From sequence record NC_041994.1: DNA of 64,000 bases. One strand, given 5' to 3'. Numbering within the stretch: the stretch's first letter is position 1; each line of letters starts with the position of its first letter. Position numbers and translations under genes: made by a program. The notes beneath the pieces are model-generated. The model saw only the letters and a list, made by a program, of their open reading frames with translations. It had not been told where the DNA came from and did no database searches. Of this stretch, positions 3,196 through 39,575 are shown piece after piece.

Positions 3196-3302
3196 GTTGT
3201 CATCCTCGGTAAATTACGGATATGCCCTAGACGGAATAAAGAGAAAAAGGGCGGTTATACACCATACCATTGGAAAAACACTCGATTCCACTGTATTTAA
3301 AA

Positions 3303-3322
3303 CCTATATTGTACTTGCGAAT
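3303..3322 (+). promoter_or_regulatory. Putative early promoter, degenerate copy
   Basis: cctatattgt-actt-gcgaat matches the NCTATATCAY-N4-GTGAAT family; heads the accessory cassette. Confidence 0.55.
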
Positions 3323-3366
3323 ATGAAGAATAATCTTCGTAACTTCCCCTTTTAAGGAGAAACACC

Positions 3367-4014
3367 ATGTTGAAGAAATCTGATCTGCTGGCTATGTACA
3401 ACGAAGTACAGGCTATCGTTCCGGATGCCAAGGTTGCACTGGCTGACAACACTGCGCTGTTCTTTCACGGTATCGTGAAGACAGCTAACAGTGCTATCTT
3501 CGAGGTGAGTGCGACGTTGTTCGAGACCGCACGTCAGCGGACTGGCAACTTCGTGTCCACCGATCTGGGTGTTCGTGGGTTGTTCCTGCGTGACGGTCTG
3601 CTGCTGCTTGAAGGCGTGCATGCGGACATCGTTTGGCAGGAGGGTGTGCCGATGTACACGCTGGAAGCGATGCGTGTACGGTACGAGCTGATGGGTCGTG
3701 GTGAAAAGCCGTTTGCATCTTCGCATGCTCGGTTTGCCTACGACATCGGTCAGCTCCAAGCTAAGCTGGCTGAACCTGAGCCAGCGGCACCGGTGGCGCA
3801 ACCTGTGGCCCATGTCGAGCCTGACTTCGGTGAACTCACGGAAGCTGAAGCAGCTTTCCGGGATCGCTGCAAGAAGGCTGACTGGTACTACGGTTACAGC
3901 GATAGCCTCCAGGTCTTTAAGGCCGGTCGGGCTTGCTGTGATGCGCTGAAGGCTGAGTCGGTACAGCACGGTGGCAACTACGCCGCGCTGTATCAGTACT
4001 ACAGCACCCGTTAA
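3367..4014 (+). CDS. Hypothetical protein with C-terminal DWYY-x-YSD domain
   Basis: SD AAGGAG, typical codon usage; C-terminal ADWYYGYSDSLQVFKAG resembles a small domain recurrent in phage proteins. Confidence 0.75.
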   Translation: MLKKSDLLAMYNEVQAIVPDAKVALADNTALFFHGIVKTANSAIFEVSATLFETARQRTGNFVSTDLGVRGLFLRDGLLLLEGVHADIVWQEGVPMYTLEAMRVRYELMGRGEKPFASSHARFAYDIGQLQAKLAEPEPAAPVAQPVAHVEPDFGELTEAEAAFRDRCKKADWYYGYSDSLQVFKAGRACCDALKAESVQHGGNYAALYQYYSTR

Positions 4015-4020
4015 CCGTAC

Positions 4021-4046
4021 ACCCCTCCCTCAATCGGGGGAGGGTT
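4021..4046 (+). terminator. Hairpin (CCCTCCC family)
   Basis: ccctccc-tcaatcg-gggaggg directly after the stop at 4014. Confidence 0.6.
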
Positions 4047-4064
4047 TAACCAAGGAGTAGTGTC

Positions 4065-4142
4065 ATGCAAGGTCTCTTCCGCGTTATCATCCTGGTTGCG
4101 ATTGTGGTGCTCGTTGCAGACATCGCCACCAACAAACAGTAA
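4065..4142 (+). CDS. 25-aa single-pass membrane microprotein (not in ORF track)
   Basis: AAGGAG 7 nt before ATG; MQGLFRVIILVAIVVLVADIATNKQ*; fills the gap exactly. Confidence 0.6.
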   Translation: MQGLFRVIILVAIVVLVADIATNKQ

Positions 4143-4176
4143 CCTGTTTTCAATTATCCCTTTAAGGAATAACGTC

Positions 4177-4515
4177 ATGACGATCAAACACACAATGACC
4201 GCACACCAGTTCAATCAGCAACAACACATGCAGATGCGTGGCGACAGCTTCAAGACGGCCGGCACTCGGGTGTATCTGTTCGAAGGTGCAACGGTGCTGG
4301 TGGATGAAGCCACCAAAACCATCACCGCTGTAAACCGCGTGCCCGGTAAGTCGTTCGAACCCATCATCGCAATCCGTCGTATCGCTTACTACCTCGGTCA
4401 TGTAAACTACCGCGGTGAGCGTCACGAGCTGGAGATCCTACGTGCAGAGACCAGTGCGTACAGTTGGCTCTTCAGCAAAGCGATGCACTTGTTCCCCAAG
4501 TCGTTCTTTAACTAA
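4177..4515 (+). CDS. Hypothetical protein
   Basis: Start moved from 4060 to ATG 4177, which follows AAGGA; 112 aa. Confidence 0.7.
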   Translation: MTIKHTMTAHQFNQQQHMQMRGDSFKTAGTRVYLFEGATVLVDEATKTITAVNRVPGKSFEPIIAIRRIAYYLGHVNYRGERHELEILRAETSAYSWLFSKAMHLFPKSFFN

Positions 4516-4535
4516 TTCCCCTTTAAGGAGAAACC

Positions 4536-4988
4536 ATGAAATTTGCCTCTCTGAAAGACTGCCTCAAGTTCTTCAACATGTCGATGATCGAACACAATCA
4601 TCGGGAGCATGTGGAGTACAACGTGATGCAACGTCACGAGGTGCGCATCGACAAGATCGGTGCTCACCCAAGCTACGTGATCACGGGTCTGGCAGGCGAC
4701 ATCTTCATCTTTACTCCGGTGAAGCGTTCGAACCTTGCTAAGGCCACCGGTTATAAGCTGGCGATCGACGGCAGTGTTGAGGATGGCGTGGGTCCTGAAC
4801 CACTGACCAAACGCACCACAGCCCTGTTTGAACTGGCGGTGTTCAAAGGTTACACACCCGTTGCACTGTTGGCGTGCATCAACGAGCACCGGACCTGTAA
4901 TCTGGCCCCTGAAGAGCTCGATGACTTTGACGAAGCTTATCGTGAAGAACTCGATCATCTTCAGACCATGCTTGAGTTTCTGATCTGA
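4536..4988 (+). CDS. Hypothetical protein
   Basis: SD AAGGAG; 150 aa; codon usage like neighbours. Confidence 0.75.
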   Translation: MKFASLKDCLKFFNMSMIEHNHREHVEYNVMQRHEVRIDKIGAHPSYVITGLAGDIFIFTPVKRSNLAKATGYKLAIDGSVEDGVGPEPLTKRTTALFELAVFKGYTPVALLACINEHRTCNLAPEELDDFDEAYREELDHLQTMLEFLI

Positions 4989-4993
4989 ACACA

Positions 4994-5022
4994 CCGGGGC
5001 TGACAACCCCGGCTTTCTTTTC
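4994..5022 (+). terminator. Intrinsic terminator
   Basis: ccgggg-ctgacaa-ccccgg followed by ctttctttt. Confidence 0.7.
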
Positions 5023-5074
5023 TGTACCTTTTCCTTTCTAACACCCACCATAAGCAATCTCTCGGAGAATAACC

Positions 5075-5716
5075 ATGACTACTATCCACGCTCGCATCGA
5101 CTCCAGCAAACTGTCCAACCTGCGGATGATTAGCAGCAACCGCGCTGAGTACAACGGTCGTCAGATCGACTTCACCACCACATTCACCAACCACCTGGAA
5201 ATCCGGGCAATTCGTGAACTGAATGGCCACACTGTCTCGGCGAGTGAACTGCGTAACTGGCCTGACTACCGTGTGGCTCAAGACGAAGGTATCATGGCGT
5301 TGTTCGCTTCCAACAAGAAGTGGACCTCGCTGAAGTTCGGTATCGATACCCACAAGGTCGATCTGCAAGTGGTGCAAGGCCACAGCGAACCGAAGGAAAC
5401 CGAAGACCTCGCACACCTGCTGTACTGCATCGAACTGATGGCAGATGGGTTTGCTTACGAGTCCGGCGGTGTCTTCAGTGAGATCCGTCAAATCGGTTAC
5501 CACGATGCGATCAATCTGGCGAGCACGGGCAGTGCCAGCAGTCTGCGAGTGAAAACTCGTCTGGGTCAGTTGGAGTTCTGGGCTCCTGTTCTGGATGTAG
5601 TGGCTAACATCCCGCGTCAACGGCGTCCGTCCGTATCGGAATCCAACTACGCTACGGCGGGTGAAACCATTGCCCGCATTGTGGGTATTGGCATGGCTGC
5701 TCTCCTGCGTCGTTAA
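5075..5716 (+). CDS. Hypothetical protein
   Basis: SD GGAG; 213 aa. Confidence 0.75.
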   Translation: MTTIHARIDSSKLSNLRMISSNRAEYNGRQIDFTTTFTNHLEIRAIRELNGHTVSASELRNWPDYRVAQDEGIMALFASNKKWTSLKFGIDTHKVDLQVVQGHSEPKETEDLAHLLYCIELMADGFAYESGGVFSEIRQIGYHDAINLASTGSASSLRVKTRLGQLEFWAPVLDVVANIPRQRRPSVSESNYATAGETIARIVGIGMAALLRR

Positions 5717-5736
5717 GACGTGGGTTTGTAGCTGAC

Positions 5737-5773
5737 GACATACACCCTCCCCGTTATGGGGAGGGCTCTCTTT
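5737..5773 (+). terminator. Hairpin terminator (CCCTCCCC family)
   Basis: gacata-ca-ccctcccc-gttat-ggggaggg-ctctcttt. Confidence 0.7.
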
Positions 5774-5794
5774 ATCCTTTTAAGGAAAATCATT

Positions 5795-6172
5795 ATGCGT
5801 ATTGTAAACCATGCTGCTTTCATGGAACTGCCACAGGGTACCGTTTATGCCCGTCATCACGCGGGTAACTTCGGTGAGTTCGAAATCAAGCTAGAGAACA
5901 CTGGCCCTAAAAGCTGGCAGTTCTTTATCGTGGCTCCGGCCAACTTCGAACTGGATGACACCGAAGACTACTTCGAGACCCTGAAGAACATTACCGAGCC
6001 CAATGTTGCGGCCACCGGTATGGCCTTCAACCAGTACTACAACGAAGACCCTGATAACACAGACTTCGTTGGTAAGGAAAACCACGAGTACGAGTACGCG
6101 GTGTTCTCGGACTGGGATATCCAGAACATGGTTCTGCTGTTCCAGAAGTTCCTCCCTAAAAGTCTGTCCTAA
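5795..6172 (+). CDS. Hypothetical acidic protein
   Basis: Start moved to ATG 5795, after AAGGA; 125 aa. Confidence 0.7.
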   Translation: MRIVNHAAFMELPQGTVYARHHAGNFGEFEIKLENTGPKSWQFFIVAPANFELDDTEDYFETLKNITEPNVAATGMAFNQYYNEDPDNTDFVGKENHEYEYAVFSDWDIQNMVLLFQKFLPKSLS

Positions 6173-6183
6173 GTTTCCTTAGG

Positions 6184-6204
6184 ACTATATCACGTTAGTG
6201 AATT
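6184..6204 (+). promoter_or_regulatory. Putative early promoter
   Basis: actatatcac-gtta-gtgaatt, 46 nt before the next start. Confidence 0.7.
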
Positions 6205-6229
6205 GCTATCCCTTTTAAGGAGTAATACT

Positions 6230-6706
6230 GTGGCGAATGAAAAACCTAAGTTCCTGGGTCTGGATTGGCAGACTGTTGACCTGAATGATCTTCAAGGGTC
6301 GATCAAGGCCTGGTGTGATGACCGGCGTAACCTGCTGACTGGGTTGCGCTACTTCATTCTGATCCAAGACCGTGATGGTGGTGGCTACGAGGTCATCCAG
6401 AACAACAAGGCGTGGCCGCTGCTGCGTAAGGTATCGCTGGGTTACGTGAGTGTGTACCTCAAGCGCAAGTACGGTCAGTCGAAGGTGGCTGCCAACGTCA
6501 ACGTATGGATCTCGACTGACGACCACACCTTCTGGAAACAGGAGTTGGAAAACGCAATGCTCGGGCAGTGGGCTAACAAAGAAGCCGAGGCAGTGCGTGC
6601 ACGTAAAGTCGGCGAATGGCTTTCTGGTAAACCGGATCGTCAGGAACATTGGTTAAAGACAGCGCCAGATGCTTTGGCGTGGCTCAAAGAAAACAACTAC
6701 TGCTAA
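6230..6706 (+). CDS. Hypothetical protein
   Basis: GTG start after AAGGAG; 158 aa. Confidence 0.7.
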   Translation: MANEKPKFLGLDWQTVDLNDLQGSIKAWCDDRRNLLTGLRYFILIQDRDGGGYEVIQNNKAWPLLRKVSLGYVSVYLKRKYGQSKVAANVNVWISTDDHTFWKQELENAMLGQWANKEAEAVRARKVGEWLSGKPDRQEHWLKTAPDALAWLKENNYC

Positions 6707-6737
6707 TCATCGCACCACCCCTATAAGGAGTAAGACT

Positions 6738-7025
6738 ATGAACCTCGGTAAAAACATCATCCAAGACATCCAACCCTTCGTTGACGTCATCATCGCTGAC
6801 GCGGCCGATCACGCGAACTGGCCAAGCTTTGCCAAGTTCAAGATCAGCTTCCGTCTGGACATCGACGGTCGTGGCTTCGGCAAGACCCAGCACCAGTACT
6901 TCTCTTCGGCCAAGGAAGTGAGCTGGTGGGAGTCCGATCGTGCTAACCGCGATCGCGTCAAAGCGGACTACACTGTCTACGAGTGGGACAACGGTCCTCG
7001 CGTCATCAAACACAACTGGTTCTAA
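6738..7025 (+). CDS. Hypothetical protein
   Basis: ATG after AAGGAG; 95 aa. Confidence 0.7.
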   Translation: MNLGKNIIQDIQPFVDVIIADAADHANWPSFAKFKISFRLDIDGRGFGKTQHQYFSSAKEVSWWESDRANRDRVKADYTVYEWDNGPRVIKHNWF

Positions 7026-7035
7026 GGAGTACAAC

Positions 7036-7380
7036 ATGTCCAAAGAACTGGCTGAGTTTGTAACACAGGCCAACATTCAGATTGACAGTGAGGGTCAACT
7101 GTTTGTTTATGTCAGCGATATGCTGGAGGGTACTGACGACTGTAGTACCAAAGCCGTCCAGTGGGCCTGTAACGTCGTTAACGAAGAAGGCGTGAAAGAA
7201 CACAACCTGGCACTGCTGGTTGACCTGCCGATCGCCGTAGACGAGCTGCTAGAGTTTCATAACGAAGGCACCGAGGACGCTAAAGAAATCCCGGTGTCGT
7301 GTAAACCACAGTTCGATGCATTGCGGGCGCAGCTTGTAGAAGCTATCGCCCGTCTGGACCGCGTCGCTTACAAATACTAG
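7036..7380 (+). CDS. Hypothetical acidic protein
   Basis: ATG after AAGGAG that overlaps the previous stop; 114 aa. Confidence 0.7.
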   Translation: MSKELAEFVTQANIQIDSEGQLFVYVSDMLEGTDDCSTKAVQWACNVVNEEGVKEHNLALLVDLPIAVDELLEFHNEGTEDAKEIPVSCKPQFDALRAQLVEAIARLDRVAYKY

Positions 7381-7388
7381 GTGTCTCC

Positions 7389-7655
7389 ATGCAAATTACC
7401 GTCACTGGGCAGCAAGAACACATCGCCCGTCAGCCCGCGTTTATTGAGCTGGTTAGGAAATGCGAAGAAGCTTTGGCCATGGGTATTACCCACAACGACT
7501 GCGTTGCCGGGATGGACAAGTACATCAGTGTGGATACTGATGCTGATGACTACATTCGTCTCGCCGTTATCGAAACCTACCAGGCGGCGGGTTGGAAGTG
7601 GATCTCCGATCGCTACATCGGCGAACTGCGTTTCGTGTTGCCATCTGAAGACTAA
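7389..7655 (+). CDS. Hypothetical protein
   Basis: AGGT SD; 88 aa; tightly packed with neighbours. Confidence 0.65.
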   Translation: MQITVTGQQEHIARQPAFIELVRKCEEALAMGITHNDCVAGMDKYISVDTDADDYIRLAVIETYQAAGWKWISDRYIGELRFVLPSED

Positions 7656-7663
7656 CAAACCTA

Positions 7664-7697
7664 CCCACTCGCCTTATTAGGATAGTGGGCTTTTATT
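7664..7697 (+). terminator. Hairpin with internal loop and U-tract
   Basis: cccact-cg-cct-tatt-agg-at-agtggg-ctttt. Confidence 0.5.
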
Positions 7698-7720
7698 CCG
7701 AATCGTACTGGAGTCATGTA

Positions 7721-8506
7721 ATGACCAAGCAAGATTACTACCGTAAGTGGTTTGAAACCAAGCGTAAATTCATCATGGAAACCCAAGAGTGTCATGCCGA
7801 GGGCATTTCCGCTCTGGAGATTGTTGCCCAGATCTTCGGTATCACCACTTACGACAGCGACATGGAATGCCACTTCGCTCGCATCATTCTGCCTGTGATG
7901 TTGGCCGTGGCCAGGGGTAAGCCGTACGACTACCACGAACAGTCGGAGCAACACTATATCGACTATCTAATGGTCTGCAACTTCACCGCCATCGAACCCC
8001 TGTTGGAATGGGGTACCTCTATCCGGGGTGCTTGGTTCTCGCCACCAAAGGAAGGTTTCAGGCCTGACGATGGTATCGGGGTGTACTCCGACGAAGCCGA
8101 TAAGCCAATGATCATTGCTGATCGTGATGACTTCTTGGCGTTCATGGAAATGCTTGACGCGGTGGTGCAAGAAGAATCGGGTCCTATCGAACTGCCAGTA
8201 TTGGCTGAGTACGATAACGACCCGGCTGCTCTCAAGCAGTTGCAATTGGCGAAGATCGTCACCGACGTCAATAACTCGATTGCTACCGCGATGGAAGACC
8301 AGGTGATCGAGTCGATGGAACAAGCCGAAGACCTCATCACCAAAGCGGTGAATGCGGTATTGAAGCCACTGGTCGAGGGCGGCATGAAAGAAGCCGAGAC
8401 GCACTGGAAGATGCTGCGCCAAGAACCTACCTCGGCACAACCGCGCTGGGGTTGGCTGATCACCCTCACCACACCGTTCGGTGAAGGCACTATCACCCTG
8501 TCGTAA
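7721..8506 (+). CDS. Conserved phage hypothetical protein (LEWGTSIRGAWF motif)
   Basis: ATG after GGAG; the motif is recalled from other phage proteins; 261 aa. Confidence 0.7.
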   Translation: MTKQDYYRKWFETKRKFIMETQECHAEGISALEIVAQIFGITTYDSDMECHFARIILPVMLAVARGKPYDYHEQSEQHYIDYLMVCNFTAIEPLLEWGTSIRGAWFSPPKEGFRPDDGIGVYSDEADKPMIIADRDDFLAFMEMLDAVVQEESGPIELPVLAEYDNDPAALKQLQLAKIVTDVNNSIATAMEDQVIESMEQAEDLITKAVNAVLKPLVEGGMKEAETHWKMLRQEPTSAQPRWGWLITLTTPFGEGTITLS

Positions 8507-8512
8507 CCCAAG

Positions 8513-8538
8513 GCCCCGACTTCGGTCGGGGCTTATTC
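8513..8538 (+). terminator. Intrinsic terminator
   Basis: gccccgac-TTCG-gtcggggc-ttatt (cUUCGg loop). Confidence 0.8.
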
Positions 8539-8563
8539 CCCAACTTACCTTTTGAGGTGAAAC

Positions 8564-9109
8564 ATGACACTGCCTAAACACGCGCTCGATAAACTCGAAA
8601 ACGCACTTTTCTTTCATTACCCCGTACCTACCCACGCTAATCACGAAGATGCGGAGATCGATACGGCTAAGCTTCAAGTGATGCTTACCCAACTCGGCCT
8701 CTCCACCTTGGTAGATTACGACAAGGTAGTGTGCGCTTATTTTTATCCTGGTTTCGATACCACCAAGGTCACCTGTGCTCAGGTCGGTATTGTCACTGAT
8801 ACGTCGTATTTCCACGTCAGTGCTGACCATGAGCTATTCCGTCATGTGTTGGTAGAGCGTTGGCCGTTGGTGATGGATCAAGCGACGTATCACCTATACG
8901 CGTCGCACAGCAAGAACCCCAACCAACTCGTGTCGTGGCCATCGTCTCAGACGAAGTTCTATCTGAGCCACGTCGGCTACAGCAACATGAAGTGGACCAA
9001 CGACGAGGATGACTCGGGTCTGCAAGTAGAGCTGGTTCGCGAGCAAGCCGTACACCTCGCTGAAACCATGATCCTCCTCACCGAACGCGACAAGGAAGAA
9101 GAAGCATGA
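8564..9109 (+). CDS. Hypothetical protein
   Basis: SD GAGGTG; 181 aa. Confidence 0.7.
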   Translation: MTLPKHALDKLENALFFHYPVPTHANHEDAEIDTAKLQVMLTQLGLSTLVDYDKVVCAYFYPGFDTTKVTCAQVGIVTDTSYFHVSADHELFRHVLVERWPLVMDQATYHLYASHSKNPNQLVSWPSSQTKFYLSHVGYSNMKWTNDEDDSGLQVELVREQAVHLAETMILLTERDKEEEA

Positions 9110-10383: not shown

Positions 10384-10391
10384 GTAACATC

Positions 10392-10673
10392 GTGACCAAG
10401 CATAACGCTGAAGGTTATGTCTGGACAGCAGAGCAGCGTGCCAACCTGAGACAAGCCTCCCTGCAAAGGGAGGCAACTATCCGTCAAAAGGTGTCCGTGA
10501 ATGGAGTGGTCTATGCCAACTACACTCGCGCAGCTGCCGCTACCGGTATTAGTGCAAAGAGCATCAAGCGCTATGCACTAGAAGGGGTACCGAAACAAGC
10601 TTCACGCAACAAGCTGTTAACACCTAAGCAATTGGCTTTAGCCAAGACCATCCGACTTGTAGATTCACTCTGA
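10392..10673 (+). CDS. Stand-alone NUMOD3/NUMOD1-like DNA-binding protein
   Basis: WTAEQRANLRQA followed by KVSVNGVVYANYTRAAAATGISAKSIKRY, like homing-endonuclease DNA-binding modules; no nuclease motif. Confidence 0.55.
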   Translation: MTKHNAEGYVWTAEQRANLRQASLQREATIRQKVSVNGVVYANYTRAAAATGISAKSIKRYALEGVPKQASRNKLLTPKQLALAKTIRLVDSL

Positions 10674-10698
10674 CTTTCTTACTGATAAGGACTTTCAC

Positions 10699-11148: not shown

Positions 11149-11153
11149 TCTAG

Positions 11154-11200
11154 ACGGACATAAGCCCCTCCCTCGCGGGAGGGGTCTATGCCGTTTTTCT
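11154..11200. terminator. Bidirectional hairpin terminator
   Basis: acggacata-ag-cccctccc-tcgc-gggagggg-tc-tatgccgt-tttt between convergent genes. Confidence 0.85.
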
Positions 11201-11202
11201 TT

Positions 11203-12846
11203 TTAGCTGCGCAGGACAGCCAATGCGGTAGTGGCGAGGTGCAGGTCGGCGTCGTAGGTACGACGAATCCAACGGATGTACAACAGCTCGCCGTTCTTCA
11301 GGTCGTTGTTCACGATCTGATCTACGTTCCAATCCCCGACAGGGATCTCGTAGGCGTTGTTGAGGAATTGGAGGATGAAGTGCGTTGGCTGTGGCGCTTC
11401 TTCTTCGAGTTCGATGTTGAACAGTGGCGCAGCCGAGTGGTACATCTGCTTGAGCCAGTTGTTCATGGTGGTGTTGCCCATGCCGAGGTTCAGACGCCAG
11501 TTGTTGACGCTGAGGTAACGGCAGTTGGCAACCAGACCACGACCGTAGCCATTCGGTTGGTTCGGCGTGAACAGGATTTCCCAGTTCGCCGCTTGGTTAT
11601 CGCCGCTGTTGAGCAGAGCGATACGGAAGGTCTGTACGTGACGGTACTGCGCGAAGCGACCATCGACCTTGTTGATGTCGACTGCCCACGTGCATTCCTG
11701 AACGACACCGTAAGCCTTCGGATCGAAAGCGTTCGAGGCCGAACCGAGTTCCACGTATGGAGTGACGTTGTAGTACGTCTGACGATCCAGGTTGTACATC
11801 CAGAATTCCATCCGGTAACCCAGAGCCGCACTGACCCACACAGGGTAGGCAAACAGCTTGATCTCGTAGGCACCATCCGCCGCTACAGTACGGGCGATGT
11901 AATCCACCGACAGGGTGCGGTTGATCGACGGTACCATGTTGAAACTGACTTCGTCGTCAGCCAAGATGTAGTTCAGCACCATCGGGAATTGCTGGCCGAC
12001 TTCGGTGGCGATATAGTTGCGCAGACCAAACAGGTTGAACTGCGTACCATTGATCGTACGGCGGTCTTGTGTACCGTCGCTGTAGGACACAATCGCGGTC
12101 AGTGGCAAAGACTCTACCGTGACGTTGAGCGGGAACTCCACCACCTGTGGATCGGCTGCCGAGATGAACGGCGAGTCGAGGTGAATACCCTGTACGTACT
12201 TCTTGCTGGCATCAGCACGACGTACTGCTTTCGAGTTAACGATCAGCAGCTGTGCCTTACTGACAGGCGTACCCTGCTCACCGTAGAACACAACGGTCAC
12301 CAGCTCACCGTTTTCGAGTTCATGGTTGGTGTAACCCGGGGCAGGCGCTTTGGCAGGTTTGGACGTCGCCGGATCGTAGCTCTCTTCGATCGGCACTTCC
12401 ACCCCAAGCCACGTACCGGACGGGTCGTACATTTGCGAGATCACAGTACCTGTGGTCTCACTGATGTCTTCACCGAGGAACGCAACCCAGTACTGCATCT
12501 CACGGTGGTAGCTGTGCAGGCGATAGTCAGGCGTCAACGTGTGTGGAGTCACGCTGGTGTCCAGGAAGATACGGAAGGATTCCGAGCTGTAGCCCGGACC
12601 TACCGCTACCAGTTTGGCCGCAGCATCCCCGTCAGTATCAACAGGGAGCTTCCATGGATGCAGAACCGAGTAGCCAGTAGATGGGTCAACGTCGACCACG
12701 ATCTGCCAGCCATTCACTTCATCGACCACACGGTCCTTTTTGTTGGGAACCCATTTGCCGGTGCTTCCTACAGCCACGATTTCATCGCGGTGCCAGATGC
12801 GGAAGCCCCGCTCGGGGTCGCGATATTTGGAGTCATCAAAAGCCAT
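11203..12846 (-). CDS. Virion structural protein (phiKZ gp26-like)
   Basis: 547 aa, beta-rich; synteny with sheath and tube genes. Confidence 0.7.
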   Translation of the reverse strand: MAFDDSKYRDPERGFRIWHRDEIVAVGSTGKWVPNKKDRVVDEVNGWQIVVDVDPSTGYSVLHPWKLPVDTDGDAAAKLVAVGPGYSSESFRIFLDTSVTPHTLTPDYRLHSYHREMQYWVAFLGEDISETTGTVISQMYDPSGTWLGVEVPIEESYDPATSKPAKAPAPGYTNHELENGELVTVVFYGEQGTPVSKAQLLIVNSKAVRRADASKKYVQGIHLDSPFISAADPQVVEFPLNVTVESLPLTAIVSYSDGTQDRRTINGTQFNLFGLRNYIATEVGQQFPMVLNYILADDEVSFNMVPSINRTLSVDYIARTVAADGAYEIKLFAYPVWVSAALGYRMEFWMYNLDRQTYYNVTPYVELGSASNAFDPKAYGVVQECTWAVDINKVDGRFAQYRHVQTFRIALLNSGDNQAANWEILFTPNQPNGYGRGLVANCRYLSVNNWRLNLGMGNTTMNNWLKQMYHSAAPLFNIELEEEAPQPTHFILQFLNNAYEIPVGDWNVDQIVNNDLKNGELLYIRWIRRTYDADLHLATTALAVLRS

Positions 12847-12849
12847 GGT

Positions 12850-15537
12850 TTAGATCCCATTGTCAACGAAGACAAACGCCGAGATATCCGGCGGTGTACG
12901 CAGGTACGTCTTCAGTGCTCGTTTCAGGAAGTTGTAACGTTCGATTGGGAGACCCACCGGCGCGCCGATCCAATGAGGATAGACCTGCACATGAGTTTCG
13001 TTGTAGGAGGTGTTAGCCAGGTCGTAGTCGAGCAACCACTCGTAGCTCTTGAGCCACTTACGGATGTCGTCATCGTTGTAGCGATCCAGCAAACCTGCCG
13101 GAGCCAACAGACCCGAAACCAAGTCATGTACCAGCTTGTTAGCAAAGCACGAGACCACAGCGTACTGGTGAGTGATCGTGTCGATCGGACCACGTGGACG
13201 TTTTGGATACAGGTTGCCCATGTACGTCGCGACCGCAGTGTCACGCGCATTGTCTTCATCACGGGCCACGCGATCGTATTCGTAAACATCACGGAACACC
13301 ATCGGCGGAGTCTGAATGCAATACGGCGCACCGTTGCGTTCGTCAGTCACCACAGCCGTGCCCCAGTCTTCTTCGAAATGAAGGGACTTAGGATCACGGT
13401 AGTGGCCGTCGATCACCATCCGCTGCACTTTGTGCGTATGGATGTTGTAGGTCGTGTCGTTAGAGAGCAAGCCGTACTCAATGAAGCCGAACTCAGTTTG
13501 CACAGGACGGGACAAGTCACCTTCACACATCCCATGGCCACGTACCAAGAACAGCTGAGCTGCCCCGGGGTCGAGGTACTCGATGTTGTGCACCACAACT
13601 TCTGGCCACTTCACGGTGTAGTCCAGACCTTCAATCAAGGCCCGACCGTTCATGAACAGATCCAGTTGAGCGAAAGGCACTTCCAACAGTTTATAGTCGG
13701 TGAGTCCTTGATGGGTCTCATAGCTCGCTACGCTGAAGCGCAGTGTCCCCATTGCTTTACTGATGGTCAGTGGATAGCAGAGGAACGCATTGTCCTGCCG
13801 CACGCAGCCGTACCACTTGGTTTGATCGTAAGTCCATACCCAGCGTGGAGTAGCACCCGAGGTATCGAGGTAACCCCAGTCCGCCCGGTTAGGCAGATCC
13901 GTGATATCCCGCCACCCGCCACGTTGAACCCCAGCGTAGATCTCAACCACGTAGACACGGAAGTTGTATTGCAGATCCAATGGAACCGGTGCCCGATCGT
14001 AAACGGTGTTCAGCGAGTTACCGCCTTTACCGACGATGGCTTCCACACGCACTGTAGCTGCGTTACGGACGGGGTAGCGTCGCCCGGCAGCATGTGGGTG
14101 CCATTCGAGCAACACACCGGCAGCGTCGAACTCAAACACTGTGGCGTTGTACCAGTAAGCGTAGTTGAGCAGTGCCTCACGACGACCATTGACGTTCTTC
14201 ACGTCAGTTGGTGTGGCTGCCAGCAAACTGGCCGCAGCATGGTAACCGAAGACTTGACCAGCAAACTCCTGTGCTGCTTCTTTAGCTTCACTGGTTACGT
14301 CCGGATCATTGAAGCCGATCGGCACAACCATAGAAGTCGGTGCACCCATGAACTTTGGATACGCAGCCTTCTCAAGGTTGGCGGCTTTCCAAATGTCCAG
14401 TGTGGAGTCAACCCCAGTCATGGCGCGCACGACCCGAGTGTCAGACATCCGGTAGAGCTCATGGATGCGCGAGGCTTCAGGTTGCAGTGGACGGTCATAA
14501 CCAGACTGACGGAAATACACCCGCAGCTTGAGTTCAGACAGACTGTTCCATTTGTCTTCGGTAAACTTCACCGAGTCCAGGATGAAGCGTGGGTCCGTAG
14601 GGTGCGCATCTTTGAACGCATTCAAACGTTCGATCGGGACACTGTAGTCTTTGTGGGTCAGCTGACGAATCCAGTTGCCTTCGTTGCGGTGATACGTCGC
14701 ACCGAGGAACCGACCATTGCCACCGCCTTCCTTAATAATGAACACGTCCAAGTCGTCATAGAAACGAATCGACTTTTCAGTCGGGTCGTTATAATGCAGC
14801 ATGAACTTGTTCTCATTATCCAGCGTGGACTGGAACGTCGGCAGCGCCGAGATAGGGAAGTCGATGTAGCGGTCGATGGAGGAGTCAATGACCATCTCCA
14901 TGGCATCACCCGGCGTACAGTTCATCAAGGACAGGGTGTTGCTGAACCGTCCGTTAACGAAGTAGTACGGGACACGCCCGGGTCGGGCTGTCAATTCGGT
15001 GGCCATGCCGATCTGTAGGTTCACCAGCTCTTGACTGGTCTTAGGTGTACCACCCATGACGAACACGGTCTTGCGAGCCGCTTGCGTCGAACGTACCGAA
15101 TCGAAATAGGAGTTGTTGTAGAAACGCATGTACACGTCTTGCTTGTCCAGCGACCCTACCCGCTCATTCATCTTGACGGCGATGATCAGGTTCTTACCAC
15201 CGGTCAACAGAACGTAGACTTCGTGACGTGGGAATTGAATGCCGTTGTTCAGATACAGTTCTGAGTACAGTGCGGTTTCGTTAGCGATCTCCGCCAGACT
15301 CATCCACTTGGCATAGCGCTTGGGCAGACCCAAGAGCTTCGGCTCGACTTTGCCGATTTGGTAGATCATGTAGTAATCGCGCTCAGTCGGCATCTGGTAC
15401 CGCATGTAGTCGACCGTGTAGGACGTATGCACCCCGAACCGAGGTGATACCGGCACGAGTTTGTACACGTGCTGCCGATCCATCGATGGGTTACACCAGA
15501 CCGTACTGATCGCATGGCGCAGAAGGTACTCGTTCAT
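12850..15537 (-). CDS. Virion structural protein (phiKZ gp27-like)
   Basis: 895 aa; size and position match phiKZ-like gene order. Confidence 0.7.
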   Translation of the reverse strand: MNEYLLRHAISTVWCNPSMDRQHVYKLVPVSPRFGVHTSYTVDYMRYQMPTERDYYMIYQIGKVEPKLLGLPKRYAKWMSLAEIANETALYSELYLNNGIQFPRHEVYVLLTGGKNLIIAVKMNERVGSLDKQDVYMRFYNNSYFDSVRSTQAARKTVFVMGGTPKTSQELVNLQIGMATELTARPGRVPYYFVNGRFSNTLSLMNCTPGDAMEMVIDSSIDRYIDFPISALPTFQSTLDNENKFMLHYNDPTEKSIRFYDDLDVFIIKEGGGNGRFLGATYHRNEGNWIRQLTHKDYSVPIERLNAFKDAHPTDPRFILDSVKFTEDKWNSLSELKLRVYFRQSGYDRPLQPEASRIHELYRMSDTRVVRAMTGVDSTLDIWKAANLEKAAYPKFMGAPTSMVVPIGFNDPDVTSEAKEAAQEFAGQVFGYHAAASLLAATPTDVKNVNGRREALLNYAYWYNATVFEFDAAGVLLEWHPHAAGRRYPVRNAATVRVEAIVGKGGNSLNTVYDRAPVPLDLQYNFRVYVVEIYAGVQRGGWRDITDLPNRADWGYLDTSGATPRWVWTYDQTKWYGCVRQDNAFLCYPLTISKAMGTLRFSVASYETHQGLTDYKLLEVPFAQLDLFMNGRALIEGLDYTVKWPEVVVHNIEYLDPGAAQLFLVRGHGMCEGDLSRPVQTEFGFIEYGLLSNDTTYNIHTHKVQRMVIDGHYRDPKSLHFEEDWGTAVVTDERNGAPYCIQTPPMVFRDVYEYDRVARDEDNARDTAVATYMGNLYPKRPRGPIDTITHQYAVVSCFANKLVHDLVSGLLAPAGLLDRYNDDDIRKWLKSYEWLLDYDLANTSYNETHVQVYPHWIGAPVGLPIERYNFLKRALKTYLRTPPDISAFVFVDNGI

Positions 15538-15584
15538 TTAGGCCTACCTGTGAACAGAGGTGACAAATTTTACTGGCATGCTTA

Positions 15585-15605
15585 GTTAAAGCTCATAACA
15601 TCGAG
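15585..15605 (-). promoter_or_regulatory. Putative late promoter (TATG core)
   Basis: Minus strand ctcgatgtTATGagctttaac; near-identical copy at 16676-16696. Confidence 0.55.
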
Positions 15606-15619
15606 CGTTTCCTAACCAA

Positions 15620-15655
15620 GACATAAGGCCCTCCCTAAGCGGGAGGGCTATATGC
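15620..15655 (-). terminator. Hairpin terminator
   Basis: gacata-ag-gccctccc-taagc-gggagggc-ta-tatgc downstream of the 15671 gene. Confidence 0.7.
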
Positions 15656-15670
15656 TGCATTTCAGTAGAA

Positions 15671-16591
15671 TTATTTGAATACACCAGCGACTTGGCGATA
15701 GACCGCATCCACGAAATCTTTCTGTTCCTTCTGGGTACCGGAGCTCAATGCTCGGGTGGCCAGTGTGTAGCGCTTATAGGAACGATCCTGAATGCAGGTG
15801 TAGACCATCGCAATGAACGTCGGCAAGTGTTCAACCGCTACACCCACGTGTTCACGAGCGTAGATGCCGAAGAAACTACCCTGAATCAATGCCAGGATGT
15901 CGGCACCTTTGATATCACCCAGACGGATGGTACCAATGTCGTTGGTGATAGTTTTGGCCAGATCATCAAACGTCTTGAGACTCTTGATTCCATCGGAGAT
16001 CTCAAGAATCGAACGATGGCTCACTTTAGTCAGCCGGTACACCACGTTCACCAACTCAGCACGAGCGTCTTTGTCGGTTGCAATGTCTGGATCGATCATG
16101 CCGTAGTAATAGAAAGCACAAACCACCATGACCTTCAGTTCAGTCGCTTCATCGAGACTGTACTTAGGGACAACCGCTCGGGTAATCCACTTGATGAAAG
16201 TCAATGCCGGGATGTCACCAAAGCGACGAATCTCACCAGGACCGTCCTTCAAGCAACGGGCGGTCAGAGCCAGACGGACGCACTGGAACATCCAGTCGTT
16301 CGAAGCAGTAAGACGGTATGTGTCTGTACGGCGATCCCACTTCGTAAATTGGCGACCGTCGATGACCAACTTGGGTTCCTGATCAGTTCCCATATTCACA
16401 AATTGGGTGAACTGCTTGACATCCTCATACGCATCGTTCGGTGTGATGAGGCAGATGTTTTTGAGGACATTGCCCGCCGGCGTTTCCACCTCAGGGAGAG
16501 GTGCTTCGATTTGGGCGCGTTTGATCTCTGTGACGATTTTGTCCACCTGGTACATGCGCCCTTGGGTGGTGTCGTATGGCATGAGTAGCAT
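15671..16591 (-). CDS. Virion structural protein (phiKZ gp28-like)
   Basis: 306 aa; GGAG 7 nt before ATG; divergent from the sheath gene. Confidence 0.65.
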   Translation of the reverse strand: MLLMPYDTTQGRMYQVDKIVTEIKRAQIEAPLPEVETPAGNVLKNICLITPNDAYEDVKQFTQFVNMGTDQEPKLVIDGRQFTKWDRRTDTYRLTASNDWMFQCVRLALTARCLKDGPGEIRRFGDIPALTFIKWITRAVVPKYSLDEATELKVMVVCAFYYYGMIDPDIATDKDARAELVNVVYRLTKVSHRSILEISDGIKSLKTFDDLAKTITNDIGTIRLGDIKGADILALIQGSFFGIYAREHVGVAVEHLPTFIAMVYTCIQDRSYKRYTLATRALSSGTQKEQKDFVDAVYRQVAGVFK

Positions 16592-16675
16592 GCGGCGACT
16601 CCATTGTGTGTCGATTAAAAATACATTTGTCGCTTAATAGCGCAAATGCTGTTTAATATTTATGGATTGAATTGG

Positions 16676-16696
16676 GTTAATGCTCATAACATCGAG
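16676..16696 (-). promoter_or_regulatory. Putative late promoter (TATG core)
   Basis: Minus strand ctcgatgtTATGagcattaac. Confidence 0.55.
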
Positions 16697-16733
16697 TCAC
16701 CAGTGCACCAAGTCCTCCTAGGAGATAGTAAAG

Positions 16734-18806
16734 ATGTCGAACGTCAACTCGACGCCCCGTATCGTTTACGGTGGCTTCAACGACAAGTCCCGCGGGACTG
16801 CGACTCGGGCACCGGTTACCTACCCGCAGCATGCTCCATTGCTGCGTCTGTGGGGCCAGACCGGTACCGATAAGACCGTTTATCTCGGCAACGAGAACAG
16901 CGACTTCAACAGCATGTTCGGCAGCGAAACCCTCGCTCGCCGTGGCAAGTTCTTCAACCTGCAATCGTTGCTGGCGGAAACCCTCTTGGGTGCTGGTAAC
17001 GGCTTCTTCGTTAAACGTCTGATCCCTGAAGACGCCAAGAAGTCGCGCATGATCATCGGCTTGGAACTGGTCCGTGACCTGATCCCTGCCGTACAAGAGC
17101 GTCTGTCCGGTTTCAACTACAACGGCCAGATCAACCCAGGTCAAACGGCACAACTGCCACCAATCGACGGCTATAAAGGCCGTGTCGTGCTGATGCCTGC
17201 CACTGGCGCCGTCGGCACCGCTGAACCAGTACCGGGTACCTTGCTGTCCGAGGTCGATGGTACCCAGTCCACCATCTACCCACTGTTCGAGCTGCCAGCG
17301 TCGTACTTCGGTGCCGCCGGTAACAACCTCGGCATCCGCATGTGGGCTCCGAACGAAAAGACCAACGAGGTCTGGGACGAGGAAACCGCCACTGCTTTCA
17401 AGACTCGCATGTTCCGCATGCAGTTCATGCAGAAGGTGGCCAACACCAACATCCCGGCGATCGTTTTGACCGCCATGGGCGAAGACTACGTCGACGTCTG
17501 CTTCACCGAAGGCGCTTACAGCGCGTCCACCGATAAAGAGTTCTACATCGGCGACGTTCTGATCAAGGCTTTCGAAGACGACGGTATCAAGTCCGGCCTG
17601 GCTCCATTGACCAGCCCGTTCTCCGAGATCCACGTCTACAGCGATCAGGTCAAAGCAGTTCAGGACATGATCTATGCTCGTGAGCTGGCCGTTAACCCGG
17701 CGATCGAACAGCACATCGAGCAGTCGAGCCAGATCGACTTCCTGACCGGCATGGGTATGGACGGCGACGTTTACCAGTCCCTGTACCTGCTGGGTGCACT
17801 GAACGGCGGCATCGTGCTGAACGATGGCACCACCGTTTACGCCACTGGTGGTGAAGACGGTACCATCAACCACGCCAAGTACGAAGAGCTGGTGACCGTG
17901 GAAAACACCGCGTTCGGTCAGCTGGGCGACCTCTACGAGAACGATGCTCTGTATCCGTTCTCGCACATCTACGACACTGGCTTGTCGATGGATGGCAAGA
18001 TCGCCATGATGAACGTGCTCGGCCAGCGCCGTGACCTGAAGTGCGTGTTCACCACCTACGTGGAAGCCGAGGGCCGTTACCCAACGTTGTCCGAAGAGCT
18101 GTCCCGTGGTCAAGTGATCATGACCCGTCTGAAGGCTTACCCGGAATCGACCCTCTACGGTACCGGCATCTGCCGCGCCGAAGTGGTGTACCAGACCGGC
18201 GAGCTGATGGATGGCGGTTACAGCAAGAAGGTTCCGCAAATCATCGACTACGCGTTCAAGCTGGCGAACTTCGCAGGCTCGGGCGACGGTATCCTGCGTG
18301 ATGGGGCTGACCCAGACCAGGACCCGAACAACGAAGTATCCCTGGTGAAGAACCTGAACGTGCCGTACTTCCCGGCCCGTGCTCAGTCCACTGCCTGGGA
18401 TTCGGGTGGCATCTACTCGCTGACCGCGGACACTCGCGTTCAGTACTACCCATGCGTGCGGTCGGTTTACCAGGACGAGACTTCGGTCCTCCTGTCGCCA
18501 ATCACCACCAGCATCGCGTGCGACATCGTGCGTCTGATCCGTCGGATTCACAAGAAGTTCGCAGGCAATGCGAAGATCTCCCCAGAGCAGCTGATCGAGC
18601 GCTCGAACAAGGAGATCACCAAACTGGTGGAGGGTCGCTACGCCGGCCGGGTGCGGATCATCCCAGAAACCTACCTCACACCGGATGACAAGAACAACGG
18701 CTTCACCTGGCACTGCAAGGTTAAGCTGTACGCGAACAACCCGCGTACCACGATGTTCTTCGAACTCGAAACCTACCGCATGGACGCTCTGGCCGCTGCT
18801 GCGTAA
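16734..18806 (+). CDS. Tail sheath protein (phiKZ gp29-like)
   Basis: 690 aa; N-terminal PRIVYGGFNDKS, C-terminal WHCKVKLYANNPRT typical of phiKZ-type sheath; strong codon bias. Confidence 0.85.
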   Translation: MSNVNSTPRIVYGGFNDKSRGTATRAPVTYPQHAPLLRLWGQTGTDKTVYLGNENSDFNSMFGSETLARRGKFFNLQSLLAETLLGAGNGFFVKRLIPEDAKKSRMIIGLELVRDLIPAVQERLSGFNYNGQINPGQTAQLPPIDGYKGRVVLMPATGAVGTAEPVPGTLLSEVDGTQSTIYPLFELPASYFGAAGNNLGIRMWAPNEKTNEVWDEETATAFKTRMFRMQFMQKVANTNIPAIVLTAMGEDYVDVCFTEGAYSASTDKEFYIGDVLIKAFEDDGIKSGLAPLTSPFSEIHVYSDQVKAVQDMIYARELAVNPAIEQHIEQSSQIDFLTGMGMDGDVYQSLYLLGALNGGIVLNDGTTVYATGGEDGTINHAKYEELVTVENTAFGQLGDLYENDALYPFSHIYDTGLSMDGKIAMMNVLGQRRDLKCVFTTYVEAEGRYPTLSEELSRGQVIMTRLKAYPESTLYGTGICRAEVVYQTGELMDGGYSKKVPQIIDYAFKLANFAGSGDGILRDGADPDQDPNNEVSLVKNLNVPYFPARAQSTAWDSGGIYSLTADTRVQYYPCVRSVYQDETSVLLSPITTSIACDIVRLIRRIHKKFAGNAKISPEQLIERSNKEITKLVEGRYAGRVRIIPETYLTPDDKNNGFTWHCKVKLYANNPRTTMFFELETYRMDALAAAA

Positions 18807-18842
18807 GCAGCGGTTCGTCCGTTCTTCACAAGGGTATAGAAA

Positions 18843-19709
18843 ATGGATCGTTACAGCAGTCCGTTCATCGGTCAGAATGGTTACGGCCGGGGCCAGTCCC
18901 CGGGCACGATCAACCTGGCTCAAGCAGGTACGCACACCTTGGCACCGGACCTGGCGAACATCGCCAGCAACACGCCACTGGTTGCGCGTAACCTGGTTCC
19001 ATTTCTCATCGAAGCGCCTCGCTTCTTTGAGTTCTTGCCGAACCGCGATCTGGCAGTCCGCTGCCTGAAAGCGTTCATCGAGAAGCACACTCGGACCATC
19101 AACGGTCTGAACCAACAGATCTCGGTCGATACCGCGGACAACCAGTACGGTGGTTCCGGTGAAGCGATCAAGGTTGCGACCAACGTGACGCGTGCGGTAT
19201 CCAGCCCAACCTTCGGTGGTTGGGAACTGCAAGGTCGCGCGGTAACCCGCTTCATCAAGTGGTGGATTCAGTACGGTATTGGTGATGAAAACACCAAGAT
19301 CCCGCTGGTCGTATCCGATGGGCAGGTAGCAGCAGCAGACTACGACGCATCGTTCTACGGTGCCACCATTCTGTTCGTTGAACCCGACGCGACTTTCAGC
19401 GAGCCGATCTCGGCTTGGCTGGGCACCAACATGTTCCCTCTGGCTACCCCGCCTTGGGAAGGTCGTAAAGACGCCGGTCAGCTGGGTCAGAACCTGGAGT
19501 TCGATATCGAGTTCTCCATGGTTTCGGACGTGTCGGTTGGTACTCTGATTTTCGCTCGCGAAATGATGCGTTCCCTGAACCTGCGCGGTATGAACCCGAA
19601 CGATCGTCGTCTGTGGTTCACCGGTGTAAGCGCCGACGTAGGTGCCGCTCAGAACGGTCTGCAACAGCAGCTGATCGAAGGCGCCGCCGCTCGTCAGAAC
19701 GTTGGTTAA
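18843..19709 (+). CDS. Tail tube protein (phiKZ gp30-like)
   Basis: 288 aa directly after the sheath; strong codon bias. Confidence 0.8.
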   Translation: MDRYSSPFIGQNGYGRGQSPGTINLAQAGTHTLAPDLANIASNTPLVARNLVPFLIEAPRFFEFLPNRDLAVRCLKAFIEKHTRTINGLNQQISVDTADNQYGGSGEAIKVATNVTRAVSSPTFGGWELQGRAVTRFIKWWIQYGIGDENTKIPLVVSDGQVAAADYDASFYGATILFVEPDATFSEPISAWLGTNMFPLATPPWEGRKDAGQLGQNLEFDIEFSMVSDVSVGTLIFAREMMRSLNLRGMNPNDRRLWFTGVSADVGAAQNGLQQQLIEGAAARQNVG

Positions 19710-19722
19710 GGGGTGACCTGAT

Positions 19723-19896
19723 ATGGCAACCGCGCAGACTCAGTCCACACCTCCTAAAGCCGGGACTCCGGGCCAAGCTCAGGCAACTGAGCGGAAACCT
19801 CAGAGTCAACTGGTGTCCACGGACATCGCGGCTGCCACCAACGGCTTTGCTGGTGACCTGGAGGCGGCTGCTGCTAGCCGCATTCAGTACAGCTAA
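19723..19896 (+). CDS. 57-aa Ala/Gln/Thr-rich small protein (not in ORF track)
   Basis: MATAQTQSTPPKAGTPGQAQATERKPQSQLVSTDIAAATNGFAGDLEAAAASRIQYS*; lies between the tube stop and the terminator. Confidence 0.6.
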   Translation: MATAQTQSTPPKAGTPGQAQATERKPQSQLVSTDIAAATNGFAGDLEAAAASRIQYS

Positions 19897-19902
19897 GTAA
19901 AA

Positions 19903-19939
19903 ACATACGGCCCCTCCCACTATGGGAGGGGTCTATGTC
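19903..19939 (+). terminator. Hairpin terminator
   Basis: acata-cgg-cccctccca-cta-tgggagggg-tc-tatgt. Confidence 0.75.
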
Positions 19940-19962
19940 CGCCTAGTGCAAAAGATCTCACG

Positions 19963-19982
19963 TCTATATCACCTGCTTGATA
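19963..19982 (+). promoter_or_regulatory. Putative early promoter
   Basis: tctatatcac-ctgc-ttgata, 48 nt before ATG 20011. Confidence 0.65.
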
Positions 19983-20010
19983 ACCCAAACATCCCTGTCA
20001 AGGAATAATC

Positions 20011-36375: not shown

Positions 36376-36383
36376 CCCAAACC

Positions 36384-36410
36384 GCCCCGGGCAACCGGGG
36401 CACCCTTTTA
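36384..36410 (+). terminator. Intrinsic terminator
   Basis: gccccgg-GCAA-ccggggc-accctttt. Confidence 0.7.
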
Positions 36411-36429
36411 TTCCGTCTAGGACTTAACG

Positions 36430-39555: not shown

Positions 39556-39575
39556 ACTATATCATCGTTGTGATA
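39556..39575 (+). promoter_or_regulatory. Putative early promoter
   Basis: actatatcat-cgtt-gtgata, 50 nt before GTG 39606. Confidence 0.65.

Follow-up and report, generated by a model that had tools for sequence, protein, structure and literature searches.

The window analyzed here, nt 1–64000 of the genome of Pseudomonas phage Noxifer (MF063068.1, 278,136 bp), carries a small recurring hairpin at the Shine-Dalgarno (SD) sequences of its accessory genes. Noxifer, a jumbo phage related to phiKZ, infects P. fluorescens SBW25; its genes include PhuZ and a multisubunit RNA polymerase. We consider it somewhat better than an even bet (probability roughly 0.55) that the element is a conserved, metastable SD/anti-SD stem-loop that throttles or gates 30S binding at the strong ribosome-binding sites (RBSs) of predicted early accessory genes. 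According to this model, a pyrimidine tract that mimics the anti-SD (consensus YYCCU) and lies 3–4 nt upstream of a strong SD (AAGGAR) would pair with that SD; the resulting stem would consist of a 3-bp CCU/AGG core, a single mismatch (usually C.A) at an SD adenine, and two or three more pairs. The hairpin would form on the mRNA and compete with 30S binding, so that initiation would be lowered or gated on otherwise very strong RBSs, and the mismatch would keep the stem weak enough for the ribosome, S1, temperature, or some factor to open it.

An earlier note on this stretch had reported six such hairpins. All six are present where it placed them, with the arms and loops it gave, and each lies 6–9 nt upstream of an ATG or GTG (written below as 5′ arm / loop / 3′ arm).

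3344..3361, + strand: SD hairpin of NOXIFER_4 (ATG 3367), UUC-C-CCU / UUUA / AGG-A-GAA
4154..4172, + strand: SD hairpin before ATG 4177, the probable true start of NOXIFER_5, UUAU-C-CCU / UUA / AGG-A-AUAA
4516..4532, + strand: SD hairpin of NOXIFER_6 (ATG 4536), UUC-C-CCU / UUA / AGG-A-GAA
6207..6224, + strand: SD hairpin of NOXIFER_9 (GTG 6230), UAU-C-CCU / UUUA / AGG-A-GUA
6717..6731, + strand: SD hairpin of NOXIFER_10 (ATG 6738), AC-C-CCU / AUA / AGG-A-GU
19991..20006, + strand: SD hairpin of NOXIFER_24 (ATG 20011), AU-C-CCU / GUCA / AGG-A-AU

Three related sites, at 5058, 5775, and 8545, had been described as fully paired. This is correct for the last, if its one G.U is counted, but not for the first two, each of which has an A.A mismatch.

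5056..5070, + strand: variant SD hairpin of NOXIFER_7 (ATG 5075), UCUC / UCG / GAGA, then an A.A mismatch and one A-U pair
5772..5789, + strand: SD hairpin of NOXIFER_8 (ATG 5795), UCCU / UUUA / AGGA, then A.A and two U-A pairs; its 5′ arm adjoins the U-tract of the preceding terminator
8545..8560, + strand: fully paired variant of NOXIFER_14 (ATG 8564), UUACCU / UUUG / AGGUGA, with one G.U, −4.8 kcal/mol

To place these sites in a genome-wide frame, we called genes over the whole Noxifer genome with a self-trained codon model and an RBS score, which gave 319 genes that largely match GenBank. Sites were chosen on the 3-bp core alone, so that the flanking positions stayed free for tests of pairing; these positions are named k1, k2, k3, and so on, as pairs counted outward from the CCU/AGG core. 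CCT stands 3 or 4 nt upstream of the SD AGG at 31 of 219 SD sites genome-wide, as compared with 6.9 expected (Poisson P = 1.4e-11). The expectation was taken from 6,913 non-SD AGG triplets, which are preceded by CCT at a flat 1.5–1.65% per offset, and the flat rate indicates that the geometry is specific to RBSs rather than an effect of composition or of a DNA palindrome. At the SD sites the offset profile has a sharp peak, with 14 and 16 cases at the 3–4 nt offsets versus about 4 at each other offset. The hairpin is carried by 29% of AAGGA SDs versus 7% of other AGG SDs, and by 36% of 7-nt matches to the anti-SD. At about 22 well-formed sites, the SD is predicted to pair with an upstream tract in the same 5′ untranslated region (UTR), as in an SD-sequestering hairpin. 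The 31 downstream proteins have no blastp similarity among themselves; recent duplication therefore does not explain the common design, and paralogy was ruled out as the source of the alike leaders. A covariance model of the element, which has 26 positions and little information, returned mainly its training sites at E 0.01–10 and no convincing new members, and Rfam gave 0 matches at or above the gathering threshold in the 64-kb window.

These counts bear on two other readings, namely that the pattern acts as double-stranded DNA, either as a promoter element or as a palindrome bound by a dimeric protein, and that it is simply chance; we regard both as very improbable. The CCT-N-AGG core and its flanks do form an inverted repeat in DNA, and some sites lie directly after terminators (5772; genome position 250029), where a new promoter might be expected. 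However, the 6,913 non-SD AGG sites show no enrichment, the spacer is either 3 or 4 nt, the half-sites covary rather than match one consensus, and a separate promoter motif is found at variable distance upstream; chance is excluded at P about 1e-11. Copies of the bare core do occur elsewhere. The earlier note had not seen the fold at the sheath SD, but the CCU-N3/4-AGG core is present at the SDs of the tail sheath, the major capsid, and one virion-protein gene; these three copies have poor outer pairs, in line with the approximately 7 copies expected by chance, and that at the tail sheath is probably one of them.

16712..16724, + strand: core-only copy at the tail sheath SD, GUCCU / CCU / AGGAG, with poor outer pairs

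In addition, a copy of CCCTTTTAAGGT lies at 28004–28025 inside gene 32, out of frame, and its ATG opens an open reading frame (ORF) of only 10 codons; it is probably a chance or decayed copy. At genome positions 229300–229328, a CCTTTAAGG hairpin is located directly upstream of, not on, the real SD of the next gene (CCCTAAGGAC).

The positions outside the core were then examined for base pairing. In Noxifer, k2 is paired at 21 and k3 at 22 of the 31 sites, as compared with 14 and 12 after permutation of the 3′ arms (P = 6e-4 and <1e-4, respectively) and with only 9–13 paired sites when the register is slid. The loop-4 and loop-3 site sets were aligned separately and without gaps, as a joint MAFFT alignment of all 52 sites misaligned the arms and put the loop-length gap at the 5′ end. 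In these alignments, which include relatives of Noxifer, the covariation scores of k2 and k3 are 0.20 and 0.22, versus 0.084–0.088 in shuffles (0/500) and 0.06–0.16 in slid registers. The pair types seen are U-A, C-G, U.G, A-U, G-C, and G.U at k2, and A-U, U-A, C-G, and G-C at k3. The proposal that the outer pairs vary yet stay complementary is thus borne out at k2 and k3, where covariation exceeds that of both permutations and slid registers; from k4 outward, no clear pairing signal was seen on the sense strand with standard pairs. The loop is 3 or 4 nt long and variable in sequence, mostly UUUA or UUA, and variation in both respects is as expected for an RNA hairpin.

The same composition could be read without any fold. 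U-rich tracts upstream of the SD are known to enhance translation via protein S1, and the element might be an extended RBS motif in which a pyrimidine- or U-rich landing tract for S1 or the ribosome precedes a strong SD and the complementarity is incidental. The 5′ flank is indeed rich in C and U and poor in G (10% G in Noxifer, 6% in the relatives), the loops are mostly U-rich as noted, and the hairpins are very weak. Yet pyrimidine composition does not predict that k3 alternates between A-U and U-A or k2 between C-G and U-A, nor does it account for orthologues that change both arms in compensation, for the sharp preference for a loop of 3–4 nt, or for the anticorrelation of k1 and k2 described below, and we therefore hold this explanation to be unlikely.

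The mismatch had been called constant. It is frequently C.A, but it is not fixed, since many sites and relatives have the mismatch one position further out. The k1 position in Noxifer comprises 11 C.A, 8 U-A, 3 A.A, and 2 G.A. Of all 52 sites, only 4 have a continuous stem; in 35, a single position is left unpaired, either k1 or k2, and k3 pairs again. Pairing at k1 is anticorrelated with pairing at k2 (Fisher P = 0.001), and hence most sites have exactly one mismatch. When the SD reads AGGAA or AGGAG, the perfect complement (TTCCT or CTCCT) is found at 0 of 39 sites, and a single transition separates 26 of the 39 from it. With the mismatch closed in silico, the energies shift from −1.0 to −2.8 kcal/mol to −5.2 to −7.4 kcal/mol. 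A C.A opposite the SD adenine follows if the 3′ arm is fixed as the SD and selection favors a stem that is complementary but not over-stable, and C.A would predominate because U-to-C opposite the adenine is the sole single transition in the 5′ arm that breaks the pair and leaves the SD untouched. The conserved C.A may also act as a protonatable A+.C wobble.

No close relative of Noxifer was found among deposited phages (major capsid identity ≤51%), and a blastn search of the hairpin region against a phage collection matched only Noxifer itself. Protein-guided searches of IMG/VR and metagenomes yielded four Noxifer-like contigs from uncultured phages (labels include L018, L019, L021, and L048; the IMG/VR identifiers of three of the relatives are 3300042013_000067, 3300046542_000227, and 3300011223_000001), with terminase identities of 83–92% to Noxifer and, in the best case, about 79% nucleotide identity. 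In the accessory blocks beside the terminase of these relatives, the element is present at 22 of 73 genes with an AGG SD. Among orthologue pairs with the same N-terminus, the hairpin is kept at 16 of 19 hairpin genes, versus gain of one at 2 of 49 non-hairpin genes (Fisher P = 9e-11), even though the protein identities of the compared pairs range from 40 to 90%, some being as low as 40–65%. The loops change freely among orthologues, and the arms change with compensation (genes 4, 6, 10, and 14, and genome site 195896). For example, the NOXIFER_4 hairpin is kept in L018 and L021 with k3 changed from U-A to A-U; the NOXIFER_6 arms read (C/U)ACUCCU...AGGAAU(G/A) in L018, L019, and L021, where the mismatch moves from k1 to k2 and two compensatory changes occur (k3 U-A to A-U, k4 U-A to C-G); and the NOXIFER_10 hairpin has a loop change from A to G in L018 (AUA to GUA) and a compensatory k2 change from C-G to U-A in L021. 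Across three genomes, k2 of the NOXIFER_14 hairpin is U.G, U-A, or C-G, and at site 195896, k4 changes from A-U to U-A and the mismatch moves from k2 to k1 in relatives. The arms of the NOXIFER_5 hairpin are kept in the L018 and L019 orthologues, with the loop changed from UUA to UUUC or GUA. Of the two hairpins with A.A in Noxifer, that of NOXIFER_7 has C.A or A.C at the mismatch in relatives (loop UCG changed to UUG or GUG), and that of NOXIFER_8 has C.A in place of A.A in L018. Covariation and conservation among orthologues together support base pairing. The 5′ flanks in L018, L019, and L021 (e.g., L021:9688-9713) also contain a recurring C/A-rich string, CCAC(C/T)A(C/T)(C/T)CCT, upstream of the hairpin (6% G), which may be an additional leader motif.

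Outside this clade the pattern fades. Phabio is a related phage of the same host that encodes PhuZ and has a syntenic genome start, and the pattern is absent from its accessory block beside the terminase; the syntenic 50 kb hold 5 core copies among 47 genes with an AGG SD, all without outer pairing. The terminase-flanking loci of Phabio and 201phi2-1-like phages have few orthologous copies, which are core-only, and those of the most distant group show no enrichment of the core. An RBS rule imposed by the host was rejected for now, as Phabio grows on the same host without the pattern. The absence in Phabio and distant relatives indicates that the element is a trait of the Noxifer clade, neither a host rule nor a general phage property. 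The earlier note had connected the fold with mRNA export from a phage nucleus; the present results lend that connection no support, and Phabio has PhuZ as well yet is without the pattern.

The genes that carry the hairpin share a transcriptional context. Genome-wide, there are 23 intergenic copies of a promoter-like motif, all on the + strand. It reads TTGAyT-N17-cTATAT(T/C), in many cases with GTGAAT(T) after it, and resembles a sigma70 promoter. The early promoters of jumbo phages, which are used by the virion RNA polymerase, are described as an AT-rich motif of about 10 nt centered near −10 (PMC7598289), and the putative Noxifer promoter motif fits this description. In the window, copies are located on the + strand at 3280–3312, 6185–6206, 19964, 26056, 39557, 39898, and 54833, including the following.

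3280..3312, + strand: putative early promoter, TCGATT-N17-cTATATt, which precedes the first hairpin by about 35 nt
6185..6206, + strand: putative early promoter, CTATATCAC...GTGAAT, immediately before the 6207 hairpin
19964..19972, + strand: putative early promoter, CTATATCAC, upstream of the 19991 hairpin

The position of the first of these would place the 3344 hairpin in a 5′ UTR. At the second, 20 nt are 100% conserved in L018 and the flanks vary. Well-formed hairpins lie in co-oriented, promoter-headed arrays in 20 of 22 cases versus 173 of 319 genes (Fisher P = 1.7e-4), and 0 of the 22 precede an annotated virion gene; a hairpin is found at 6 of 22 first genes after a promoter. The distance from promoter motif to hairpin varies (22–44 nt) and that from hairpin to start codon is constant, which ties the element to translation and not to the 5′ end of the mRNA. 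The hairpin itself was rejected as a promoter, given the separate CTATAT motif at variable distance upstream. The suggestion of the earlier note that the fold is a cis-element of an early regulon therefore stands in a qualified form: it is a selected cis-element of RBSs, and its genes belong to an accessory class that is probably early, as judged by the promoter motif (20/22).

Several results weigh against a throttling SD stem-loop on the mRNA. The hairpins are weak: their energies at 37°C are −1.0 to −2.8 kcal/mol for the arms alone and −1.7 to −3.5 kcal/mol when flanks are included, and at 28°C the range is −1.9 to −3.8 kcal/mol. At four of the six original sites, nothing but the 3-bp core is paired in the minimum free energy fold. 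Under the standard energy model, the sense hairpins are barely more stable than arm-permuted controls (z = −2.5 in Noxifer and −0.4 in the relatives), and the complementary strand reaches z of about −3.8 and −3.9 because each sense C.A becomes a G.U there. In a generic test, the SD and 18 nt upstream were folded with RNAfold for 276 genes and compared with shuffles of the 5′ flank, and no excess sequestration was found (mean −2.69 versus −2.86 kcal/mol in the shuffles; SD paired in 57% of both). Finally, both the fold and its effect are predictions from sequence and computed energies alone, and membership of the genes in an early class is a prediction from the promoter motif alone. As to the generic test, the signal is specific to the tight 3–4 nt loop geometry and not to SD burial in general.

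The energies on the complementary strand raise the possibility that the selected structure lies there, in an antisense RNA or in the template DNA, and that its overlap with the SD is secondary. The strand is ambiguous because every C.A of the sense strand turns into G.U (G.T in DNA) on the other, where most sites would be perfect stems of 6–7 bp. Positions k1 to k4 in Noxifer are paired at 21, 18, 23, and 23 of 30 sites on that strand versus 14, 20, 21, and 13 on the sense strand; perfect stems in the relatives number 15 of 22 versus 1 of 22; covariation in Noxifer reaches k4–k5 if C.A is counted as a pair; and one L048 site has two C.A mismatches. However, the element keeps a set position relative to the SD and the start codon, and its enrichment is confined to SD sites; much of the antisense pairing is compositional, as the 5′ flank is C-rich and the 3′ flank A-rich and the permuted means are also high; the sense G.U pairs of the 8545 family and of 6207 would be mismatches on the other strand; and the minus strand has no U-tract or promoter-like motif beside the element. 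The 0 of 39 perfect complements has no rationale on that strand, since perfect stems should be avoided only if they do harm on the mRNA. Based upon the SD and start-codon locking, the compositional nature of the antisense pairing, the sense G.U pairs, and the total avoidance of the perfect complement, we favor the sense mRNA and consider a complementary-strand structure improbable.

If the hairpin acts on the mRNA, it may do so with a partner. The element could be a translational operator or cleavage determinant through which a clade-specific phage protein or a host protein, such as a repressor, a helicase, or an SD-directed endonuclease of the T4 RegB type, switches the early accessory regulon. 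This possibility, which we consider rather unlikely, overlaps with the intrinsic SD/anti-SD stem-loop and differs from it only in the need for a trans-acting factor. A single design at approximately 20–30 unrelated genes that is conserved in the clade would suit it, as would the preservation of a non-Watson-Crick position whose place moves, and the lack of the pattern in Phabio, a phage of the same host, points to a partner confined to the clade and not to a rule set by that host. On the other hand, the unconserved loops and covarying outer arms leave little sequence beyond the SD for a protein to read, the free variation of the loops argues against loop-specific recognition, and no candidate factor was found, though no proteome scan aimed at RNA-binding proteins or nucleases was made. 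More speculatively, the hairpins might define a post-transcriptional regulon in which a clade protein or modified ribosome reads the mismatched SD stem-loop to time translation of the early accessory genes, or the C.A, as A+.C, might render the gene set responsive to temperature or pH during infection; we find either doubtful.

The element was next compared with known systems. CsrA/RsmA bind a GGA presented in a hairpin loop; their sites in Pseudomonas mRNAs also place A(N)GGA over the SD within a small hairpin, whereas the predicted Noxifer fold pairs the GGA within the 3′ arm rather than exposing it in a loop and would thus hide it. The coat-protein operators of MS2, Qbeta, and PP7 are similarly small, repressor-bound hairpins at a translation start, with a loop of 3–6 nt and a single unpaired purine in the stem. 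Each of these phages has a single such operator, in which an A is bulged, the loop bases are conserved, and the start codon lies within the hairpin; the Noxifer element instead has a C.A mismatch, variable loops, an enclosed SD, and many copies.

By analogy, the element would work like RNA thermometers and the inhibitory hairpins of T4, but it lacks the defining sequence or architecture of the thermometers. In the fourU thermometer, exemplified by blyA of the SPbeta prophage, four consecutive uridines pair with the SD (PMC10586365), and in ROSE-like thermometers, such as that of Pseudomonas ibpA, U(U/C)GCU blocks the SD in the 3′-proximal of two to four hairpins (PMC3669281). The fourU and short ROSE-like types resemble the Noxifer element in having a short 5′ UTR hairpin in which an upstream pyrimidine tract is imperfectly paired with the SD, non-canonical pairs that keep the stem meltable, and conserved stems with variable loops (PMC3669281, PMC10586365). 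The Noxifer element differs in four respects: its anti-SD tract is YYCCU rather than UUUU or U(U/C)GCU; its stem is shorter and weaker (6–7 positions, −1 to −3.5 kcal/mol); it is a single hairpin without a stabilizing first hairpin or G-C clamps; and it is found at approximately 20–30 unrelated phage genes, not at one heat-shock or virulence gene. The 5′ arms read CCCU, UCCU, or CCCCU, with no UUUU opposite AGGA at any site and with no UYGCU.

In T4, genes e, soc, 49, and I-TevI have inhibitory hairpins in the initiation region, and a late promoter inside the 5′ arm yields late transcripts without the inhibitory strand (PMC3014915). As in T4, where a helix that takes up the SD and/or the start codon lowers 30S binding and thereby times translation, the Noxifer hairpin would hinder initiation, but the T4 structures are longer and gene-specific, unlike the one small motif that recurs at predicted early genes of Noxifer (PMC3014915). 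No recognizable promoter motif was seen within the 5–7 nt Noxifer arms, although the late-promoter sequences of the clade are not defined. The targets of T4 RegB/S1 have the consensus GG*AGRAYARAA in early-gene SDs, and secondary structure decides whether the SD is attacked (PMC3014915). The Noxifer sites likewise have GGAG-type SDs at predicted early genes, followed by A-rich sequence, but their 3′ contexts (AGGAGAAAC, AGGAGUAAU) fit the RegB consensus only loosely (PMC3014915). Instead of RAYARAA after an unpaired GGAG, they read AAACACC, UAAUACU, and UAAGACU, several SDs are GGAA, and the GGA lies in the predicted stem. Noxifer is not known to have a RegB homologue or to undergo such cleavage. 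A search of the phiKZ-group literature found no description of an element like that of Noxifer.

Some further features of the window and genome lie near these subjects. The annotated GTG start of NOXIFER_5 at 4060 (4060–4515) is probably wrong: the hairpin SD before ATG 4177 and the orthologues in two relatives, which start at that ATG, both point to it instead. The stretch from the terminator to the hairpin also holds an unannotated hydrophobic ORF of 25 codons (4065–4142), preceded at 7 nt by an AAGGAG SD. Inverted repeats of other kinds also embed the SD. Upstream of NOXIFER_49 (39575–39605), the SD is in a different palindrome, UAGCU-AAGG-AGCUA, with AAGG in the loop, and at genome positions 97118–97156, a stem AUUAC...GUAAU encloses the SD; SD-embedded inverted repeats beyond the CCU/AGG class may thus exist. 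GC-rich terminator hairpins with a conserved TTATTCCGT(C) tail are located at 7660–7703, 8508–8542, 36380–36417, and 44020–44056, and on the minus strand near 3239. The phiKZ terminator motif reported by ONT-cappable-seq is ...YTTATKYYGT (PMC10914365), and the Noxifer tail is of the same design, which extends this terminator type to the Noxifer clade. An open frame of 1,276 codons at 11188–15018 (+) faces the annotated minus-strand virion genes 18 and 19 and was treated as a shadow ORF, as the codon model prefers the annotated genes. Ten neighboring gene products had 0 Pfam matches and only two PHROGs matches, both to families of unknown function.

To our knowledge, work on nucleus-forming and other phiKZ-related jumbo phages has so far centered on RNA polymerases, promoters, and terminators, and hardly any has dealt with translational control. 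The hairpin is of use for annotation, as it supports ATG 4177 and, together with the promoter motif, helps to delimit a probable early gene class. If the mismatch does make the hairpin sensitive to conditions or readable by a protein, the element could become a compact regulatory part for Pseudomonas. For the phiKZ-related group, a repeated, covarying RBS motif at approximately 20–30 unrelated genes offers a concrete, testable handle on post-transcriptional regulation.

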